Shown here: piece by piece, positions 1 through 46,433 of the stretch
How the letters are laid out: the number at the start of each line of letters is the position of its first letter
How positions within the stretch are numbered: position 1 is the first letter of the stretch
NCBI RefSeq assembly: GCF_000315625.1
Contig: NW_005434655.1
Span: 435,090 to 484,574, forward strand
From: Guillardia theta CCMP2712
Lineage: Eukaryota > Protista > Cryptophyta
Length of the DNA stretch: 49,485 nt
Direction: 5' to 3'
Notes under the pieces: generated by a model
Told to the model about the DNA's origin: nothing
Seen by the model: only the letters and a program-made list of their open reading frames with translations
Databases searched by the model: none
Position numbers and translations under genes: made by a program

Positions 1-3000
1 CTGGTCTTGGACTTGCTCATCTCAATCGCTCGCAGTCGCTCGAGCACCAGCCGCATGTCCTTCTCGTACTCTGCGAGCATCTGCGTCCGATGAGAGCAGG
101 GAGGGAGAGGAGGCACTGGGGGAGAGGAGGAAGAAAAAGAGCCGAGCGAGACTGAAGGGAAAGTCCGAACGACGAGGATGGAGAAGAAGGATGGGCAGGA
201 GCAGGTAAGGGAGGGAGGAAGAGGAGAGGAGAGACCTGGAGATTTCGACGTCGACGAGGATTGAAGAAGAATGGGTTAAGGAAGGAGCGACGGAGAGGTC
301 GGAGAGCCGCGATGAGCTTGAAGCAGGGGAGGACGAGCCATGCAGGCAGAGCAATCTTCATCGGCAGCCTGGCGACGAGGAGTGAGGGGGAGGGGACGGA
401 GAGAGCAAGCTGCTACCCGGTCACTTTGTCGCGCGGGGAGAGGAAGGGAGGGGAGAGGAAGAAGGTCATGGAGTAGGGGCCTGCTGCAGCGTCACGACTC
501 GAGAGCCTCTCGTTCCTCTCGCTCCTTCTAGCCGCTTGTCGATCTCTTCCTGCAGCCTCCCGTCGCTCAGCAGTCTCGCTACTTCGATCTCGTCCTGCCA
601 TGGTGGTCATGCCCCTCCTCCCCCCTTCCTGGGTCACTTTATATGCCAGCAGCTTGTAGTAGTTGGTGGCTACCGCCAGCGTCAGACTCTTCACTCTGCT
701 TGACGCTCGTCCCTCTGCCTCCTCCATCGCCTCCACCGCCTGTTTCTCGTTCTCATCCACTGGATTCTTCTCCTCCTCCTTCACCTGTTCGTACTTGGTC
801 GCCAGAGCCTCGTCCTGATATGATCGCAGTCGCTGCTTCCTGTCTCTTCTCACCTTCTCCGGGTCCTGCCTGTCCTCTACCACCTCCTCCCTCCCGCTCT
901 CCCCGTAGAGCGCCTCCTCCAGCTTCTTGCTCTCTGCTGCAGCCACTCGTCCCCACTCGAACGCCGCCAGGTTGAGGTCCACGGCGACTCCCGTCTCCCG
1001 GATGCCCTCGAGGAGTCTGTGGCGGGGGAGCGGAAGCATGCCTTTCTGGTAGGCGAACCCAAGCGAGAAAACGTTGACCTTACCCCCATCGCCGATGAGG
1101 TCTTCACAGAGGGCGTACATCTCAGAGCTGCAGGTACAACAAGCTGTGAGAGGGGAGGCGAGGGAGGGGCTTGGGACCTCGTGACGTTGCTCTCTCCTGC
1201 TCGCTGCGTAATGCCAAGCAGCATGTCCTCAGTCGGGAAAGAAAGATCCCGATCTCTGCCAGCACCTCAGCTACTCGCACAACCTCACTCTCCTCCTCTC
1301 CTCCTCCCCTCCTTTCGCACCTGGTGAAGCTTCCTGGCATGATCGCATGCGTATTGCACAGGACGCGTGTGGAAGGTCCAATGCTGGCGAGACTGGCGGG
1401 GTAGGAGGCGGAGATGAGGTCAAGCGCGATGACAGCATCGACTGCTCGGGTCCCAGCTCGAACTGAGAGGAGGGAGAACCTGAAAGAGAATAATAAAAGA
1501 AGGGGAGGACAGGAATTGAACACGAGGAGATGACAGAGGAGGCGGACAAGCGAGGGAAGACGAAGAGAAGCAGGGGAAGGAGGAAGGAAAGAGGATTACT
1601 CTGAAGCATGTTCATCTGGACGAGCAACTTTGATCATAGAGTTCACGGAACCATTCTTCTGTGACAGACCCACCTGATGCTGCTCTCGAGTCAGCCTCCC
1701 CCTCCTCCCCCCTCCCCCTCCTCCAGTACCAAAACATTGACGCGAAGTCCAGCTGCATGTGCAGCACGGCCGATGATGGCTCCAGCTGTGATGATGCCGC
1801 AGCCTCCGACGCCGAAGAGGAGGATGCTGTGCACTTGCCCGGGGGCAAGAGAAGTAGAGGACGAGCACGGCTCCGGCACAGGGAAGTCCGAGAGCTTCAG
1901 CCTCCTCAAGGCTCGATCCTCTAGATTCCTCGGCTTTCCTCCTGCGACCGCAACGAAGGACGGGCAGAACCCCTTGTTGCACGAGTAGTCAGCGTTGCAG
2001 TTGGACTGGTCGATCATCCTCTTCCTTCCCAGCATCGTCTCCTTGGGCGCCAGGCCCACACAGTTGCTCTGCACGCCGCAGTCGCCGCAACCCTCGCAGA
2101 CTTCCTCATGGATGAACATCCGTCGCTTCATCTCCTCCTGCTTCCTCACCCGCCGCCTCCTCCTCTCCGTCGCGCACTCCTGGTCGAAGATGATGGCGGT
2201 CACTCCCTCCACCTGCCTCCTCGTCAGTCCGCCTGCCACATCCTGGGCATCTCCTGGACCTGACTGAGGCGGAGCTGCTCGGCCATGAGCTCCTGGCGGG
2301 GGAGGACGCGAAGAGAGGAGCGTTTGTGCTCCCGCGGCTTGTCGGCGATGATGGTCACTTGCTTGACTCCCTCCGCCAGCAGCTGCTCCCCCATCACCTC
2401 CGGATCTGCTCTCACCCCCGTGTCGTTGGGCTGACCCCCCGTCATCGCGACTGTCCCGTTGTGCAGAACCTGATGGTCAAAGGAGGGAGTGAGGAGGAGA
2501 CGAGGCAGGAGCTGAGAAAGCACCTTGAAGGTGACGTTGACGCCAGCTGCTACACATGCTCTCACCGCCATCGAGGTGGAGTGAATGAAAGATCCGTCGC
2601 CGACATTCACAAACACTGAAAGATGCTCAGTAAAAGCGCGAAGACGGACGTGATCCAATTTGAAGGAGGGGAGGCGAGGAGGGAGATGGGGCGGGGAAAA
2701 TGGAGGAAGGTGGGGGGGACGGAGGAGGAGGAATGAAGTAGATGAAGAAGGAAGGCACCATGCTTGCTCTTGAGATAGGGACTCATTCCTATCCAGTTTG
2801 CACCTTCTCCTCCCATGGGAGAGAAAAACTTGATGCGATCCATGAACATCGCAAGCGTGTGGCATCCTATCCCCCCGAGAGCGAAGCTGCCTCCTGGAAG
2901 CACCGTCGAGGAGTTGTGCGGGCAGCCCGAGCAGTAGTAGGGAGATCTCTTCATCCCCACGTTGGCGAGCTGCTGCTGAGGAGGGAGCATCAGCAACGAA

Positions 3001-4724
3001 GGAGGAACTTCGACTGTCTCGTCGCTCAGAAGTCTCAGCGCTCGGCGAATGGCGTTGGAGATGTGCAGCAAGGAGAGGTCGACCTCCTCCGGCAGCAGGA
3101 TCTTTCCTTCAAGATCTTGCTTGCCGATCACCTTCGGTCGGACCGGCGAGTTGAATAAGATGTCTTTGAGCTGCTGAGCGTGAGCACCCCTCCCGCCTCA
3201 GATCTTGCAAGCACCTGCGACTCCAGGAAGGAGCGCTTCTCTTCCACCACAAGCACTGCTGACTTGGATGAAGCGAAGTGCGACAAGGACAAAGAGTCGA
3301 CGGGCCAAACCAGAGCAATCTACAGATGAATCATGTGTGTGAACAACCGGAATCAGAAAAGTTTCACAAGCAAGAACAGATGGGAAACGAGCATGGAAAA
3401 GGTCAGAGCAACAGTGTAAACTCTTTGTCTCACCTTGTAGACTGAGATTCCTAACTCACAAGCTTTCTGCTCGTCGATTCCCATCGCTTGCATCGCCTCG
3501 ATCACGTCATACGCAATGGTTCCTGCCGTCACAATCCCCAGCTTGCCTCCCTTGCGATCACCCCACACCACCTGGAGGCATCATTACGTTCCTCCTCCTC
3601 CCAGCAGCCTGAACCTTGTCCCACTTGTTATGATAAGCGAAGGCTTCGACCGCCTTGAGCTTATGCTTGTACATCCTCACGTCCTGCTGACCCTCAGCCA
3701 TGACCGCACAAGCAGCAGCTCACCTGAGAGATCCAGTCGTCGCGGAGTCGAAGATGAAGCCCCCCATTCGGCATCGCAAAGTCGGTGAGAGGAGGGTCGC
3801 TCGTCTCGTAACAAAGCTTGTCAAAGTTAACGTTGGTTGCACTGCAAGAAGCTTCACACTCTCTCACATTCAACATCAGTGAGGGGCAGCAACATTCTCA
3901 GCTCTTGAGACACAAGGAGTCTTCCTTGCCCTCAAAGCCTTGAAGGCTCAGCGTGGAGGCGTATCAGGCGTGTGACTTTACCTGTCAACCATTAACGACG
4001 TAACCCGCATCGCTGCCCAGCAGCCGCTGAAGCGCGATAGTTGGATGCCGTACACCCCGTACTCCAGCAACTCTGCAACTGATCCTGGTGCAAGGATGGG
4101 AACGTTCATGTCCCTGAAGTTGAAGTCGCTCTGATGAGATAGAGACGATGACTTGCACGCAGGATCATCTCCCGCCAGGCATAACACTCCTCCTCTCTTC
4201 GTCGTTCCCGCATAGTTGGCATGCTTGATCGCATCGCCGCTCCTGTCAATTCCTGGACCTTTGGCGTACCAGATTGCAAACACTCCATCCACGGTCTTGT
4301 CCTGCAGTACGCATGCCTGCTGTGTGCCCTGAACGCTGGAAGCTGCTATCTCCTCGTTGATGCCAGGAATGAAAGTGATCTTCATTTCTTTCATGAGCTT
4401 CTCCATCCTCATCAGCTGAAGGTCCAAACTTCCGACAGGAGTGCCTCTGTAGCCGGACACAAAGCCCTCTGTATCAAACCCCCGATCCTTGTCGCACTGT
4501 CTCAGCAAGACAGGAAGCTTGACTAGCATCTGCATCCCAGTCATGTAGTGCTGTCCTTTTCTGGAAACATACTTCTCATGATCCTTGGCGACTTGTGACC
4601 GTGTCAACTCACTTTGTGGTCGTCTCGCTTCCTTACGAGGAACACTCTTCGCTCTCAAAGTGATTGATCTCGAAACCCGCGTAGCCCATCTATTGCTCAA
4701 CGCTCCAAGTCTTCTTGGAATCAT
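1..4724 (-). CDS. ior: Indolepyruvate:ferredoxin oxidoreductase family, fused alpha+beta single-chain type; multi-exon, 3' end beyond the left edge; probable mitochondrial presequence
   Basis: Successive exons give GFVSGYRGTPVGSLD, PGINEEIAASSVQGTQQ, WYAKGPGIDRSGDAIKHANYAG, AGDDPACKSSS, RSPYYCSGCPHNSST, GIGCH, TPP-binding GDGS..HNGTVAMTGGQP, ferredoxin motifs CEGCGDCGVQSNC and CNADYSCNKGFCPSF, and beta-domain GVGGCGIITAG, GLSQKNGSV, LGFAYQKG, YYKLLAYK. Exons are separated by GT-AG introns. First in-frame ATG is at 4724 (MIPRRLGALSNRWATR). Confidence 0.93.
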
Positions 4725-25431: not shown

Positions 25432-26405
25432 GGTAGAGGCCGACGAGGTTGTTTACTCAACATACAAATTATTTATACTCAACTTGGCCGAATGCTCCGA
25501 GGCGGACTGACCCTCAACAATCGGTGAGTCACTTCCGAGTCAGTCCGAGCCACCCGGTCGGCTGTTCCGGGCCCGGGCCCCGGCCCGGCAGTTGGAATGG
25601 ATACACGATACAAGTCTGGTGACGCCTTTTAAAACGGTCAGAGGATTAAGACTTTCTGGTGTAATCTTTCTATTTAATTTGAAACTTACTTACTTTAATT
25701 TACAACTGAAATTATGAAGCGATACAGCATCCCTGCATATTTCCCCTTCCAACATATGTATTTTCATTAATTAAAATAAAGTTTTAATTGTCAGCCCCTT
25801 CCTCCTTTTGAAGAAGATTCTTTTCGATGTATCGTATTTAGTGCTCGGACACCACCTCCAATCACGATGGGTGGGGTGGGTTAATGTTGCACGGGTGGAT
25901 GTTCTATCAACAATACTCGGTAGGGGTAATATTTCAGTATAAAGGAGGGGTCATAAGTATGTAGGTTGAGAGTAGGGTGGGCGATGATAGGCAAAAGACC
26001 AAATCGAGGGTGGGTGGTGTAAGAACGCGGAAAGCGCAAGCAATGTTACAAGGGGGGGACTGAAGAGGAGTATGAGAGGAGGGGCAGAGGGGAGGGAGGG
26101 CGAAGAGGATAGGAGAAGGGCAGGAGGCGAAGGCCAGGAGAAACTAAGATGTCGGAGGGTAGGGGGAGGCCTTTCAGTCAGAACTTGTGCGAGAGAAAAG
26201 CACGGGATCGTTAGAAAAGGGAACCTGTTGAAGAGAGCATGAAAATCTTCGGTGTGCTTTCCTCGTTTTGAGAATTTTCAATAGGCGGGAGTGGGAGAAA
26301 ATCTTCTTGTATGAGACGAAGTCGCTGCAAAAGTCAACAGTGTATAGTGTGAGGGTTCGATTGCCCCATCAACCTTTTCTTTCTTCCTCTGCTCTCGTGA
26401 CCGCA

Positions 26406-29400
26406 ATGTCGTCGCTAATCAGATTCCTGCTGTTCCTTCTCTTGGTGTTCCCGCATCAAACAGAACAAGGGATGCTAGGAGCCTTGCTGTCTAAGATTGA
26501 TCAAGCTCAGCTCGAGGCCTACGACGCGATGCGCGTGGCCCTCCTGCGGGTGGGGCAGATGTCAAGGGTGGGCATGAGGGAGAAGAACATCTCCTTGCTT
26601 GTTGGAGACACCTCAGTGATCAGGATGCTTGAAGTACATGGCAGCAGTAGCGCCACCAAACAACGAGTCGAGTACGACACCTTCCACTTCATCGTTCAAG
26701 AAATCATCGACGAGGCGCAGGTATCCTGCACTCAATCGAACAGCTCGCTACTGGGCTTCCTCGGCCCAACCAGGAGCTCTGACGTTTACCTGATGAGAGA
26801 CTACGAGGTGAGTCACAACAGTCAAAAGCTCACGATGAGCTTCAGCGCCACCAGCTCGAAACTGTCCAACAAAACCGCGTTCCCCTACTTCTCCCGCGTC
26901 TGCCCCTCCGACTCCCTCCAGTCTCAAGCTCTCTCCGACCTCTTCGTCCAGCTGCAATGGACCGCGTGCCACATCATCGCCTGCCCCGACAGCTACTGCC
27001 AGGGGCTGGCTCAGGGCTTCAAGGAGCAGGCGGCAAGCAAGGGCGTGGCGGTGGAGTCGATGAACGTGTGGGAGTTCAACAACCCGGACGCGACGCGGAG
27101 CTTGCTCAATGACCTGACGTCCAAGTGCGGGGTGACGAGGATCGCGGTGCTGTGTCTGCACACGGAGCAAGGGCTGGAGGTGTTCCAGGCGGCGACGTCA
27201 CTGGGGATCTCGGAGAGGATGGTGTGGGTAGGCAGCGAGTCTGTGAGTACGCTGCCGGCGAGCGAGCTACCGAGGGAGTACGTGGGGCTGAGGGTGGGGC
27301 TGGACCCGAGCAGCAGGGCGTTCGAGGATCTTGTGAGCTTCTGGAGCCAGCAAGACCCCAGCAGCTTCCCGGGGAGGAAGAAGCTGATAGACAACCCGGT
27401 GATCGCGCTGGCACATGACGCGGTGATGGCGTACGGGGAGACGTTCGACCGGATGATCAGAGAGGGGAAGGACGTGTACAAGGTGGAGGAGCTGAAGGCG
27501 AGCCTAGAGAAGGTTTCGTTCGAGGGAGCGACGGGGCTGATCGAGTTCGACAAGCAGCTTGACAGGAAAAATGCATGGTGAGGAGAAGAGGAGTTGGATG
27601 CGATCTGACGTTGGTTCAGGTATGATGTTGTTTACTTGTCTTGTCTTGTCTTGTCTTGTCTTGTCTTTCTTGTCGTGTCTTGTCTTGTCTTGTCTGACGG
27701 CAGGCAGGTACGATATCATTCATACATACAACAACTCGACCAGCGTGCTGACTTACTGGACGCCTGATGGGATGAACTCTGCATCGAACCTGTCAAATTT
27801 CAGAGAGGTGATGGGAACCTCGCTCCAGCTTCCCTGCTCCAAGAAACTCAGTCAGAGCGTCATCATCGTCTCCGTCATCCTCCCCCTCGCCTTCGTGTTG
27901 ACGTTCCTCACCTGCTGCATCTGGCTGGGCCTGCGAGCGAGGAGAGACAAGTACTGGACCATCAACATGTCAGAGATCGAGTTTCCCGCGGACGGAGGAG
28001 TCATCGGACGAGGAGTGTTTGGGGAGGTGATGAAGGCTCAGTACCGAGGGACGACTGTAGCTGTCAAGCGAGCGCTGCCCCAAGTCGACCTGCCGGACGG
28101 CATTTCCTCGACCTCCTCGACCTCCTCCCTCGATGAGACTGCCGTCTACAAGTCCAACTTCCCGGATGCGAAGGCGCGAAACAGCCCTTCATCCTCCATC
28201 TCCGCCATGATGGGGCTCAGTGTGTCCTCGGCACTGACCAGGAGGAGATCGTCCAACGAATCGCTCTCCTCCTCTACTCTCCGCGCCGCCTTCGTGGAAG
28301 AGATGCGGAAGCTCTCTCGTCTGCGGCATCCTTGCATCACGACGGTGATGGGCGCGGTGAAGGGAAACAAGAAGTCGGGCCCGATGCTGGTCATGGAGTA
28401 CATGGAGTTCGGCTCGCTGCATGATATCATTCACAACGAGACCTTCACCATGGACTGCGACATCGTGCTGGAGATCCTGCTGGACATCGTGGAGGGGATG
28501 AACTTTCTTCACTCCTCCATCCCCGTCATCCTCCACGGCGACCTCAAGTCGCACAACATCCTCGTCGACAAGAACCTCCGCGCTAAGGTCGCGGACTTCG
28601 GCTTCACCCAGAAGAAGTCTCTTGGCCTCTACTCTACCAGCTGGATGGCCCCCGAGGTCCTGCGGTACCGCATGCGCGGGCCGGAGGCAGACGTCTACTC
28701 GTTCGCCATCCTCATGTCAGAGATCTTCAGCAGGCGCGAGCCCTACGAGGGGGAGGACCTCCAGCTCGTGCTCGAGCAGGTCGCTGACATCAGCAGGCTG
28801 GAGGACAAGAGGCCAGCTGTGCCCCAGGACATGCCCAAGGAGCTGAGGGGCCTGATGGAAGAGTGCTGGCACAGGACCCCCGACGTTCGCCCTCCCTTTA
28901 GCGAGATCCAGAGGCGGGTCAAGGCCCTGATCATCGTCTACAACCCACGACGACTGAACACCAGCTTCAGCTGGAAGAAGGAGTACTTCCAGCTGAACAG
29001 AGACGCGAGCAGAGCAGACGTCCTTCTCACGCAGATGTTCCCAGCTCACGTGGCGGACGCGCTCAAGAGGGGAGAGAAGGTGAAGCCTGAGGAGAAGGAG
29101 AACGTGACGATCTTCTTCTCCGACATCGTCAACTTCACTTCCATCAGCTCCCGCGTCTCTGCCGACAAGATCTCCCATATGCTCAACACCCTCTACACCG
29201 CCTTCGACGCCCTGGTCGAGAAGCACGGCATCTACAAGCTCGAGACCATCGGCGACGCCTACATGGCTGCTGCCAACCTCGTGCTGCCGCAGGAGGAGGA
29301 CCATGCGCTGAGGGTCGCAGGCTTCGCTCTAGATGCCGTGGAGGCAGCCAGTAACATCCTCCTCGACGATGATCAGCCGCAGCTGGGCACAGTGACGCTG

Positions 29401-30205
29401 CGAGTTGGGATACACAGCGGGCCAGTGGTGGCGAGTCTGATCGGAACTCAGAAGCTCAAGTACACCTTGTTCGGAGACACGATGAACGTCTCCTCGAGGA
29501 TGGAGTCCTCGTCCCTGCCCGGGAAAATCCAATGCTCTAAGGTGACGATTCTTGTCCTCCCCCTCTCGTTCTTCTTCGTCCCTCTCTCCTTCTCACCTCT
29601 CGCTCTCGTTTCACCCATATCTCACATCTCCTCACCTTATCATCAAATCTTCCTCGTTCCTGATTCCTCGCTCGCTCGCGCGCTCCCTCCCTCTCTCCCT
29701 CTCTCTCTCTCCCTCCCTCTCTCCCTCCCTCCCTCCCTCCCTCTCTCTTTCTGTCTCTCCCTCTCTCTCTCTCTCCCTCCCTCCCTCCCTCCCTCTCTCC
29801 CTCCCTCTCTCCCTCTCTCTCTCCCTCTCTCCCTCCCTCCCTCCCTCCCTCCCTCTCTTCCTCCTCTCTCCCTCCCTCTCTCCCTCCCTCCCTCCCTCTC
29901 TCCCTCCCTCTGCTTCGGCTGGTGTGGCTCACTTTCTCTCGCAGGCCACTGCAGAGCTCATCACTCGCCAGAGGGGGGCAGACTCGCACATCATCGTTAC
30001 CGAGAGAGGAGAAATTCCCATCAAGGGCAAGGGCATCATGACCACCTACTGGGTGACCTCTTCATCCCCAGCTTCCTCTTCCCCTCCCACATCCATCACC
30101 CCTCCCTCTCTGCCCCCCTCCCTCCCTCCGGTGCTCGAGAACTCTCTGCAAGACATCGAGATCAAAGTTGGCGAGGGAGAGGTCAGCGTGAGCATCCGGG
30201 AGTGA
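26406..30205 (+). CDS. Receptor-type guanylyl cyclase: signal peptide + ANF-receptor/periplasmic-binding ectodomain + TM + protein kinase + class III cyclase
   Basis: Signal MSSLIRFLLFLLLVF; LGPTRS, SFSATSSKLSNKTAFPYFSRVCPSD, AHDAVMA, FEGATGLIEFD; TM VIIVSVILPLAFVLTFLTCCIWLGL; kinase GRGVFG/VAVK/HGDLKSHN/DFG/APE; cyclase FSDIVNFT, YKLETIGDAYM, RVGIHSGPV, KYTLFGDTMNVSSRMES, IKGKGIMTTYW. Two introns (about 27578-27703/27707 and 29542-29944). Confidence 0.95.
27635..27694 (+). repeat. (TCTTG)n intronic microsatellite
   Basis: Tandem pentamers. Confidence 0.9.
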
Positions 30206-30539
30206 AGGAGGACATTGAAGAAGGATATTGTTTGCATGTAAAATACAAGGTAGATGTACATCACAGCTGAATTACCGCGAGCGTTGAGGGCGAGGACGGG
30301 GCATGGGCAGTGAATGACATACGGCAGGACATACGGGGCAAGAGGGAGGGAGGGAAGGAGAATTGAAGGGAGGAAAGATACAGAGAAGCAGAGGACGCAA
30401 AAGACGAAGGGATTCCCCATAGAGAGGCAATGGCAGTAGCCTCTAGAGCAAACGAGCTCGTTTCAACGTGTAGGTGTTGGACGAAGACGAGGCAAGCAGT
30501 TGAGGTCAGAGTGGTGGAGGGTGACGACGAAGAGCACGA

Positions 30540-42983: not shown

Positions 42984-45900
42984 ATGCCGCTCGGACTTCA
43001 ACATGGAAGAGCGAATTCGTTCGCAGACAAGGACTACCTAATCTTGTCCTCTGACGTCAAGTTCTTGCGCACACTGTTCTTTCAGGCGTTGCGGGCTGAA
43101 GAGGCAGACGAGACAGTGTACAGGAAGGCGAACAAGGAGCTGAAGGATAACCTGGAGGGCATCCCCGGAATCCCACAGAGCGTGAAGGAGCTCTTCCAGA
43201 TCAGTCTCATGTACGAGCAAGATCCGACAGAGAAGAACTTCAAGGCGATGCATCAGAAAGTTCTGCACATGAGTGCTGCGGACATAAAGATTGCTGGCCG
43301 ACTGTTCCTGGAGATGTTGCAGCATGCCAATCTTGTTGAGAGGAATCATCGAGTGCGCAGGTAGAGTCTGAATTATGAGTGGTATGTTTGATCTAAACTT
43401 TGATGTAAGGTGGAGAGAGTACAAGCGTGGCGACAAGACTGTGAAATCCTCCTCTTCCCAGACTTTGCAGGATTGCTTCAAGGAGCTCATGGAGAAAGGC
43501 TTCACTCCTGAACAGATCAGAGAGTCTCTGCTTCGACAGAACACAGAACTTGTGTTCACAGCCCATCCCACTCAGGCTGCTCGAAGAAGTGTCTTGACCA
43601 AGCATGCAACGATTTCTCAACTTCTTGAGCTCCATGACCGCAGGTAAAACCCCTTAGCAATGCAGTGTTTCAATGATAGGAATCTTCTTGATCTATTCTC
43701 TTGTGAATTTCCTTCCTACTTGTTCCAAATCAAAAATCTTGATGGCTTACCATGCTTGCAGCGGGCCAAATGGAACCTCGAAGCTCACGCCGCTCCAGAG
43801 GTCTGAGATTCTTGCTGCGTTGCAAGAGTCGTTGCTGGGTATCTGGCGAACCAATCCAGTCAGGAGGCATAAGCCAACTCCTGAAGATGAGGCTAGGTAT
43901 TGACACACGACTCTGACTTCACATCGAAGCTCTTGACTTGAATGTATCAGTATGGTCTTTCAGTTGTGGAAGAATCCTTGTGGGAGGCTCTTCCCGACCA
44001 TTACCATGCAGTCGATTATGCATTGAAGAAGATCGGATGCGAACCACTTCCTATTGACTGTTGCCTCTTGACGCTGGGGTCCTGGATGGGAGGAGATCGT
44101 GATGGAAATCCGTACGTCACAGCGGTTCTCACCAAGAGAGTCGTTTTCCTCTCCCAGGTTTCGAAGTTGATAAGTTGTTTTAAGGCTCTCTAACGTTGAC
44201 CTCCAGTGGAGAGCAGCGCACTTGTATTGGACTGAGGTTGATCAACTGTTGTGGGATTTGTCTGTCGCTGGTCCTGGAAACAAGGAGATTCAAGAAGAGG
44301 TGCGGCCTGTTGTCGTCAAATCATTTCATGTCATTCTGACGTCAAGTTTGTGCTCAGATTGCTAGGATTAATGGTATCAAGTCAAGCAACGCCAAGGGAA
44401 CACTCAAAAAGAATCATTCCCTTACCTCCGTGCACAACCTACTGGCCCCTTTTGATTTCTATCGCCCTCAGCTTGAGACCGAGGAAAACTACAGACAGGT
44501 TCTCACCCACATTCGTGCCCGTCTTGCCGCCACGGTCCGTCGCGCTACAGCTCTCTCACAGGAGCAGCCTTTCAAGCCTGATCCAATCAATCATCACTAC
44601 AGCTCAACTTCTGAGCTTGCCACGGATCTTCTCCGTATCTATCGGTCCCTTCACGAATGTGGTGATGGAATCTTGGCAGAGGGACGCTTGAAGGAGCTTC
44701 TTTGGCGTGTCCACACTTTTGGATTGTCACTCACTCGCCTGGACATTCGCCAGGAAAGCACAAGGCACGCTGACGCTCTGGATGAAGTCACAAGCTACCT
44801 TGGGTTGGGTTCATACAGAACCTGGAGCGAGGAGACGAAAATTCAGTGGTTGACCAACGAGTTGCACTCAAAGCGCCCATTGATTCCTCCTGACCTCCCT
44901 TGCTCAGCTCCCGTCAAGGAAGTCATCGATACCTTTAAGATGATAGCAGAGATTGGCTCTGAACCTTTCGGCGCTTATGTGATATCTATGACTACGTCTG
45001 CTAGTGACGTTTTGGCTGTTCGATTGCTTCAAAAGGAAGCTGGCATCCAGCAACATCTCAGAGTGGTTCCGTTGTTTGAGACCAAGTTGGATCTGGAGAA
45101 TGCTCCTGCGTGCATGGAGCTGCTGTTCAAGAACAGCTGGTATCAGGCCAACCTCTCCAGCCCACCACAGGTCCCCAACATCGGGTGGCAGCCGCATCAG
45201 GAGGTGATGTTGGGATATTCCGACTCCGCCAAGGATGCTGGTCGTCTGGCATCTGTGTGGGGGCTGCATAAGGCGCAGGAAGCTCTGGTGGAGCTCAGCC
45301 ACAAGTACAAGATCAAGCTGAATCTCTTCCATGGTAGAGGAGGGTCAGTGGGGAGAGGAGGTGGTCCGCAATACTTGGCCACCTTGTCACAGCCGGCTGG
45401 ATCTGTTCAAGGCTGGATGCGTGTCACTGTGCAGGGAGAGGTTATTGACCACTACTTTGGTCTTCCATCAATCGCTTCTCACACCATGGAGAGATACACT
45501 ACTTCGGTGCTTACTGCAACCCTCACCCCTCCTAAGGCTCCTTCAGATGACTTCCGTGAGATCATGCAGCGGCTGTCCGAGACGAGTTGCAACAAGTACA
45601 GGTCTCTCGTGTTTGAAGACCCGGAGTTCATCGAGTACTTCCGTACGGCGACACCGGACTTCGAGCTCAAGGGCCTCAACCTGGGATCTCGACCGTCCAA
45701 ACGCAAGCAGGGAGGAATAGAGTCGCTCCGAGCGATCCCGTGGATGTTTGCATGGACTCAGACTAGGCTGCAGCTGCCGGTTTGGTTGGGAGTTGGAACG
45801 GCTCTGAAAGCCGAGATTGACAACGGGAACCTCAAAACTCTTCAAGATATGTATAACGACTGGCCCTTTTTCCGCTCCACGGTCGAGCTGGTGAGGGTTG

Positions 45901-46433
45901 AGGTGATGGTGAACTGTTGTGATGCATGCTTTTCAGCTTGAGATGGTGTTGGCAAAGACTAGCAAGACCATTGCTGATTACTACGAGTCGCTGCTGGTTC
46001 CCGAAGATCTCCAGGTGAATCTCCGATGTCGGTTGCGCCTCCTGACCGTCGGTACCAGAGCGTGAGCTCCAAAGTGTGGGAAGAGTTCGAGAATACGATG
46101 AAGAGCATCCTTCAAGTGATCCGGCACGAGCACATGCTCGAGGGCGACAGCTCCTTGAGCAGCAGGCTTGCCATCGCCACCCGCGTCCCTCTCGTCGACC
46201 CCATCAACGTCCTGCAGGTCCGACCATCTGCTGGCAGTGCTTAGCATCGTCCCTGACTCTCCAACAGGCGAACGCGCTGGTGAGGATGAGGGCGGACGAA
46301 AACCAGCCGGACATTCACGTGCTGCGCGATGCCTTTGCGATCACCGTTCAGGTGCGGGCTAGGACGGCCGTGCCCTCCTATCACTGATGATGACCTGCAG
46401 GGAGTTGCGGCAGGAATGGGATGGACAGGATGA
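42984..46433 (+). CDS. ppc: Phosphoenolpyruvate carboxylase, multi-exon, no evident targeting peptide
   Basis: LVFTAHPTQ, KPTPEDEAR, GSWMGGDRDGNPYVT, LDIRQES, YVISM, VVPLFET, QEVMLGYSDSAKDAG, FHGRGGSVGRGGGP, SLRAIPWMFAWTQTR, final exon GVAAGMGWTG*. Confidence 0.98.

Follow-up and report, generated by a model that had tools for sequence, protein, structure and literature searches.

The window analysed here, a 49,485-nucleotide stretch of the Guillardia theta CCMP2712 genome (contig 19, C19, positions 435090-484574), carries on its minus strand, from window position 4724 to 1 and running off the window start, a gene that encodes a single-chain 'long' indolepyruvate:ferredoxin oxidoreductase (IOR) family protein. 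This long IOR adds a new eukaryotic member to an enzyme family known from bacteria. Its sequence leads us, with moderate confidence, to read it as a functional cryptophyte nuclear gene that was acquired from a bacterium and encodes a 2-oxoacid:ferredoxin oxidoreductase (OFOR) for branched-chain or aryl 2-oxoacids, likely in the mitochondrial matrix.

Family membership and integrity of the protein

Profile searches, alignments and both phylogenetic trees were run with individual exons as queries, and the genome scanned was the 87.1-Mb assembly of 669 contigs. The NCBIfam model NF009589 (PRK13030, 'indolepyruvate ferredoxin oxidoreductase family protein', 1170 positions) was matched collinearly and exon by exon from position 14 to 1032. 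Pieces on open reading frames (ORFs) of the minus strand between 4757 and 1 covered model positions 14-217, 285-325, 335-359, 374-499, 487-604, 601-762 and 869-1013, the short exons supplied 285-358, 764-836 and 1011-1032, and a six-frame profile scan of the genome agreed with the ORF-based matches. The exon scores add up to about 860 bits, above the model's cut-off of 816, as a simple sum over exons with the last ~140 model positions partly lost in a run of N. The match upholds the original assignment to the fused IOR family. Pfam on the IOR ORFs returned almost solely DUF6537 (PF20169), at 26.2 bits on the exon-13 ORF and just below the cut-off of 27. Exons 14-17 also align to this domain, its C-terminal end lies in the N run, and the donor of intron 14 is GA. 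POR_N, the PFO/PNO domain, was not matched by Pfam on any IOR exon ORF, and the cut-offs of the two-subunit enzyme models were not reached by exon 1 for IorA (TIGR03336, 28.4 versus 650.9 bits) or by exon 9 for IorB (TIGR03334, 22.1 versus 205.8 bits).

All of the IOR modules and motifs that had been named from the sequence are present: NEE, YYCSGCPH, GDG...N, two Cys-rich motifs, an IOR-beta-like part and, just under its Pfam cut-off, DUF6537. The N77/E78 pair of the NEE block, which holds the activating Glu of the PYR (pyrimidine-binding) domain, is invariant in the exon-1 alignment, and the GDG...N thiamine-diphosphate motif is intact (2601-2455). Eleven Cys columns are invariant in 56 bacterial proteins, 4 for the proximal cluster and 7 in the ferredoxin-like insert, and all 11 are Cys both in the window copy and in a second copy of the gene (the paralog, described below). 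The insert had been called 2x[4Fe-4S]; its two Cys-rich ferredoxin-like motifs are indeed there, but it has 7 invariant Cys and not 8. When fragments were compared with the 56 full-length bacterial proteins at columns with 95% conservation or more, the window copy kept 126 of the 132 columns it covered, the paralog 125 of 126 and an environmental relative 128 of 132.

Exon map

The gene has at least 17 exons and 16 introns within the window, with agreeing phases and a sense codon at every split codon, and its exons sum to 3524 coding bases. The introns are 40-155 nt long (median 50) and 15 of the 16 are GT-AG. Exon borders were drawn from the sequence and then script-checked exon by exon, with splice sites predicted from sequence and homology. 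ATG 4724 is the earliest ATG downstream of in-frame stops. The features are as follows.

3982-4724, minus strand: exon 1, with the start codon, N-terminal extension and PYR domain; NF009589 14-217, 286.6 bits; donor GTAAAG
4584-4724, minus strand: N-terminal extension of ~47 residues, presequence-like and lacking in bacterial kin
4367-4350, minus strand: NEE motif of the PYR domain, in exon 1
3724-3841, minus strand: exon 2; AG/GT borders, phase agrees; fragment-aligned to full-length bacterial kin
3615-3683, minus strand: exon 3; AG/GT borders; preceded by a 40-nt intron
3434-3571, minus strand: exon 4; NF009589 285-323, 24.3 bits
3215-3319, minus strand: exon 5; NF009589 325-358, 26.4 bits
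2759-3170, minus strand: exon 6, start of the thiamine-diphosphate domain; NF009589 374-499, 117 bits
2939-2916 and 2876-2859, minus strand: YYCSGCPH and GGIGCH in exon 6, with three of the four proximal [4Fe-4S] cysteines
2524-2615, minus strand: exon 7, with GDG of the thiamine-diphosphate motif at 2601-2587; both flanking introns common to the paralog
2260-2469, minus strand: exon 8, with VLHNG at 2469-2455, the Asn end of the thiamine-diphosphate motif; NF009589 529-604
1730-2212, minus strand: exon 9, after a 47-nt intron; NF009589 601-762, 202.4 bits; weak IOR_beta matches
2188-2174, minus strand: FDQEC in exon 9, with the fourth proximal Cys
2098-2060 and 1999-1961, minus strand: ferredoxin-like insert in exon 9, which also holds the start of the IOR-beta-like domain
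1600-1679, minus strand: exon 10; NF009589 764-786
1321-1479, minus strand: exon 11; NF009589 789-836; donor position common to the paralog
1178-1255, minus strand: exon 12, 25 full codons; GT-AG borders, phases fit; fragment-aligned to bacterial kin
638-1127, minus strand: exon 13, where the beta-like domain ends and DUF6537 starts; NF009589 869-1013, 85.5 bits
525-594, minus strand: exon 14 (DEIEVARL...); NF009589 1011-1032; acceptor common to the paralog
481-524, minus strand: intron 14, 44 nt, non-canonical GA...AG
417-480, minus strand: exon 15, matching the conserved '..F.LAPP..' block of bacterial kin and the paralog
236-368, minus strand: exon 16; GT-AG borders, phase fits; aligned with the DUF6537 part of an environmental relative
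1-80, minus strand: exon 17, truncated at the window start, where the N run adjoins; frame open to base 1

For exon 3 a second acceptor (CAG|CAG) is available 3 nt upstream, and the one chosen was a by-eye fit to the relatives P0002 and P0158. Exon 9 retains 8 of the invariant Cys.

Nuclear residence and a second copy

The IOR gene is a nuclear gene and not contamination, as shown by its introns, host-like composition, eukaryotic neighbours and an intron-sharing paralog. At third codon positions the IOR exons have a GC content (GC3) of 0.69, which falls in the 0.60-0.85 range of neighbouring host ORFs. Downstream on this contig are genes for a RING-finger protein, an armadillo-repeat protein, a receptor-type guanylate cyclase and phosphoenolpyruvate (PEP) carboxylase. 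The two copies are 215 kb apart on one 957-kb contig, with the paralog on the minus strand at about C19:216100-223400. The paralog is complete at its C-terminus and carries an Arg-rich N-terminal extension of its own. At least eight of its intron positions coincide with those of the window copy, which indicates that most introns predate the duplication. In its first coding exon the paralog shows an apparent 1-nt frameshift in a G run (about 6481-6484 of C19:216501-224500), with no room for an intron. It is also nearer than the window copy to the environmental relatives, with 78% identity to the relative P0156 over 115 columns.

The roughly 50% identity of the protein to proteobacterial proteins and the assembly gap that the locus abuts could be taken as signs of bacterial contamination or of an assembly chimera. 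We give this practically no probability and rejected it, as it is already refuted by the 16 introns with host-like GC3, by the eukaryotic genes on the same contig and by the intron positions shared with the paralog. The nuclear, intron-rich and non-contaminant status claimed in the original prediction was confirmed by the same evidence.

Relatives and bacterial origin

Eukaryotic relatives of the IOR were very few among 5.8 billion clustered proteins. An exon-1 scan of 1.84 billion representatives gave 2613 matches, of which P0002 and P0003 were 62-65% identical and the others at most 51%. Word searches with two environmental relatives, in which proteins longer than ~1186 residues are not visible and full-length eukaryotic models may be missed, returned only six eukaryote-type clusters, all on environmental metagenome or Logan contigs, and several of the proteins called in these clusters run into non-coding repeat sequence. 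Inside the eukaryote-type clade identity was 62-87% and then dropped sharply to at most 53% for bacteria. The closest ESM Atlas clusters were all bacterial. Among 185,579 bacterial and archaeal species genomes, the best 80 loci were nearly all from Pseudomonadota at 46-53% identity and included Thalassospira, Pseudomonas, Paraburkholderia, Azospirillum and Asticcacaulis.

The nearest relatives of the window copy, at 62-69% identity, are on environmental contigs (L011, which is Ga0315899_10001853 of JGI metagenome 3300031784, L096 and L097). On L011, the sole contig inspected in detail, the IOR gene is in several pieces and carries introns, far fewer than the window gene, with its first ~430 codons uninterrupted.

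Trees of exon 1 and exon 9, built separately, each placed the eukaryote-type rows on one side of a branch (SH-aLRT 98 and 97). The eukaryote-type clade sits in a Pseudomonadota-dominated radiation, and the trees resolved no bacterial sister group for the clade. The sequence comparisons are in keeping with a single bacterial transfer, its source probably a proteobacterium, into a narrow eukaryotic lineage. The lateral acquisition and domestication proposed earlier agrees with the introns, the host-like composition, the eukaryotic neighbours, the nesting among Pseudomonadota and the scarcity of eukaryotic kin. Because the introns were gained before the duplication, this would be a clear and datable bacterial gene transfer. 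Our literature search found no description of a long IOR in Guillardia or other cryptophytes, and literature on indolepyruvate oxidoreductase with eukaryotes, lateral gene transfer, protists or hydrogenosomes described no eukaryotic long IOR. No literature was found that mentions DUF6537 or PRK13030.

N-terminal extension and location

The N-terminal peptide quoted in the original prediction was correct. The first 30 residues of the window copy contain 8 Arg/Lys and no Asp/Glu, with the first acidic residue at 32. An 11-residue stretch of the extension has a helical hydrophobic moment of 0.89, and the 12-residue hydropathy maximum is 0.21, indicating that there is no signal-peptide core. Arg-rich extensions with few or no acidic residues occur in both paralogs and in the environmental relatives and are absent from the bacterial proteins. 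Acidic residues within the first 30 number one in the paralog (at position 30) and two to three in the environmental relatives, and the three extensions are alike in composition and not in sequence. Plastid import in cryptophytes requires a signal peptide. Since the extension is Arg-rich and acid-poor and has no signal-peptide core, mitochondrial import is the best guess, and it is plausible from these sequence features that the IOR is imported into the mitochondrion.

Substrate and metabolic context

The surroundings of the bacterial genes give a lead to the substrate. A divergent Lrp/AsnC regulator lies upstream of the long-IOR gene in four of five bacterial loci. In Paraburkholderia xenovorans the long-IOR gene overlaps a class IV aminotransferase gene, which we take to be of the branched-chain type, and in Asticcacaulis it overlaps a Leu/Phe/Val dehydrogenase gene. 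Both partners make 2-oxoacids from amino acids, suggesting amino-acid-derived 2-oxoacids as the substrate. By analogy we infer that the enzyme carries out CoA-dependent oxidative decarboxylation of such 2-oxoacids with ferredoxin as the acceptor. Pseudomonas, Paraburkholderia, Azospirillum and Thalassospira, among the near bacterial kin, are aerobic genera, so an oxygen-free niche would not be required and the dark or hypoxic role suggested earlier found no backing.

The G. theta genome was searched for enzymes that could work with or in place of the IOR. PaaA and the ATP-grasp_5 domain of ADP-forming acyl-CoA synthetase were not found in the genome search, leaving a route through phenylacetate and an ADP-forming acyl-CoA synthetase without support. 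The emphasis of the original prediction on aromatic substrates, phenylacetyl-CoA and auxin was likewise not borne out, given these two negatives and operon partners that favour branched-chain 2-oxoacids at least equally. The genome search for HydF gave generic GTPase matches only and the sole Fe-hydrogenase-like gene of the genome scored weakly; coupling to a hydrogenase, as had been proposed, was dropped on these grounds. The sole Pfam POR_N match of the genome (C22:447069-447752, 244 bits) lies in a 945-residue open frame that is PFO/PNO-like and separate from both IOR genes.

A first scan of the genome for E1 components found PDH and OGDH E1 genes. The E1-alpha gene of the branched-chain 2-oxoacid dehydrogenase (BCKDH) is on C173 (54995-58108) in many small exons, most of which escape six-frame hidden Markov model scans; a 37-residue exon of it matches human 2-oxoisovalerate dehydrogenase alpha (BCKDH E1-alpha) with E = 5e-14. 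The idea that the IOR substitutes for a lost BCKDH was rejected because this gene is present, and the IOR would be an extra route and not a replacement.

Proposed mechanism

We propose that the ancestor of a narrow eukaryotic lineage took the gene from a bacterium, most likely a member of the Pseudomonadota, and that after its acquisition the gene was interrupted by many spliceosomal introns, was extended at its N-terminus and was duplicated. By homology, the enzyme would decarboxylate amino-acid-derived 2-oxoacids with the help of thiamine diphosphate and CoA; its substrates would be branched-chain 2-oxoacids, aryl-pyruvates or both, as supplied by transamination or deamination. It would yield the matching acyl-CoA and CO2, and two electrons would pass through the enzyme's own three Fe-S clusters to ferredoxin. 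The most likely site would be the mitochondrial matrix, beside the NAD-linked BCKDH and not in its place, where the electrons could go to a mitochondrial [2Fe-2S] ferredoxin.

Alternative explanations

A number of observations count against the reading of a functional gene with this role. At the exon 14/15 junction the frame shifts. In the paralog an intron of 44 nt with GT...AG borders interrupts the matching codon in the same phase, and the window copy has there a 44-nt stretch (524-481) whose donor reads GA. Retention of the intron would end the frame at the stop at 468-466, and a by-hand search for a canonical alternative found no frame-restoring GT/GC donor and AG acceptor giving an intron longer than 23 nt. 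The GA...AG borders reflect a mistake in the assembly, a donor that is unusual but tolerated, or defective splicing, and because of them the last quarter is only presumed to be spliced correctly. The last ~60-90 codons, whose counterpart in the paralog includes the '..IRGYGHV..' block, fall in a 3.66-kb N run directly before the window start (C19:431431-435089). The window copy also has a long branch (0.5 versus 0.15 for the paralog) and has lost a few near-invariant residues, such as W to Q in the ..WGTQQ block. On the functional side, the literature search found no substrate assay of a long-form IOR member, a PDB sequence search with three exons found no solved structure of one, and the presence of BCKDH E1-alpha leaves no obvious unique job for the IOR. 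The donor, the branch and the substitutions would fit a window copy that is a decaying paralog, its splicing blocked by the GA donor and its protein truncated in the C-terminal DUF6537 region, of which most would be lost, with the other copy alone functional. We consider this quite improbable, as nearly all of the highly conserved columns and all of the Cys ligands are kept, and the three exons after intron 14 are open, keep the conserved blocks and have canonical borders, which would be unexpected if they were no longer translated. The single altered base of the donor could be an assembly error, and the paralog is itself flawed by its apparent frameshift.

A real and expressed enzyme might instead be cytosolic or act in another compartment, with an extension that is not a presequence. 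That the three extensions share composition only, and not sequence, would suit this, and we regard it as possible, if on the doubtful side. Conservation of an extension in both paralogs and the environmental relatives and the amphipathic stretch in the acid-free first 30 residues of the window copy speak for import, and the lack of a signal-peptide-like core in this copy, set beside the way cryptophytes target proteins, argues against the complex plastid. It is less likely still that the IOR is mainly an aryl-pyruvate enzyme making indoleacetyl-CoA or phenylacetyl-CoA that would serve auxin-like signalling or the breakdown of aromatic compounds. The family name, the distant similarity to archaeal IorA/IorB and the Leu/Phe/Val-type dehydrogenase partner lean that way, but no assay of a long-form member was found behind the name, the presumed branched-chain type of the aminotransferase partner points elsewhere, and the genome search found neither the PaaA epoxidase subunit nor the ATP-grasp_5 domain.

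Comparison with known enzymes

'The long indolepyruvate:ferredoxin oxidoreductase' is the commonest OFOR of alphaproteobacteria (PMC10411912). Compared with this bacterial long IOR (NF009589/PRK13030), the window protein has the same order of modules: a PYR domain, a thiamine-diphosphate domain that holds the proximal cluster, a ferredoxin-like insert, an IOR-beta-like part and a probable DUF6537. It keeps all invariant Cys and the cofactor motif, with an exon 1 identity to its Pseudomonadota kin of 46-53%. It differs in being encoded by a eukaryotic nuclear gene with 16 introns, in its N-terminal extension of ~47 residues, and in having no Lrp regulator or aminotransferase partner beside the gene.

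The two-subunit IOR of archaea and anaerobes is represented by the biochemically defined Pyrococcus enzyme (Mai and Adams 1994, as it is cited in PMC13768988). It belongs to the same superfamily and has the same module order, and its IorA and IorB models match exon 1 and exon 9 weakly. Since the window protein scores far under the cut-offs, is a single chain and has the extra C-terminal DUF6537, the substrate range of the two-subunit IOR cannot be transferred to it. PFO/PNO, the usual eukaryotic 2-oxoacid:ferredoxin or NADP oxidoreductase, shares superfamily and chemistry with the window protein but is a different family, and eukaryotic PFO/PNO is also held to be of bacterial origin (PMC13768988). 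Mitochondrial BCKDH would share the substrate class and the acyl-CoA products if the proposed IOR substrates are right, but it is an unrelated multi-enzyme complex that is lipoate- and NAD-linked.

Significance

Among eukaryotes, discussion of ferredoxin-dependent 2-oxoacid oxidoreductases usually centres on the PFO/PNO and OGOR that anaerobes and a few algae possess (PMC13768988, PMC10411912). Two intron-rich long-IOR copies in an aerobic phototroph would widen this list. We raise only tentatively the further suggestion that cryptophytes run an OFOR of the aerobic-Proteobacteria type in a respiring mitochondrion, parallel to BCKDH, which would turn amino-acid carbon into acyl-CoA (possibly also arylacetyl-CoA) and pass low-potential electrons to mitochondrial ferredoxin. 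If true, such a long-IOR pathway would, as far as we found, have no described precedent among eukaryotes, and its OFOR would be one with no tie to anaerobiosis. The gene would also give a handle on the large bacterial long-IOR family, for which no substrate assay was found, and the bacterial operon partners are a cheap lead to the substrate of that family. In practical terms the value is modest for now and hinges on a demonstration of expression, location and substrate.

Other genes in the window

Two other loci in the window were noted, both on the plus strand. A large PEP carboxylase exon (Pfam PEPcase, 633 bits) lies at 44430-45941. At 26268-30270 two adjoining long ORFs encode ANF-receptor ligand-binding, protein-kinase-like and guanylate cyclase domains, which is the architecture of an animal-style receptor guanylate cyclase in a cryptophyte.

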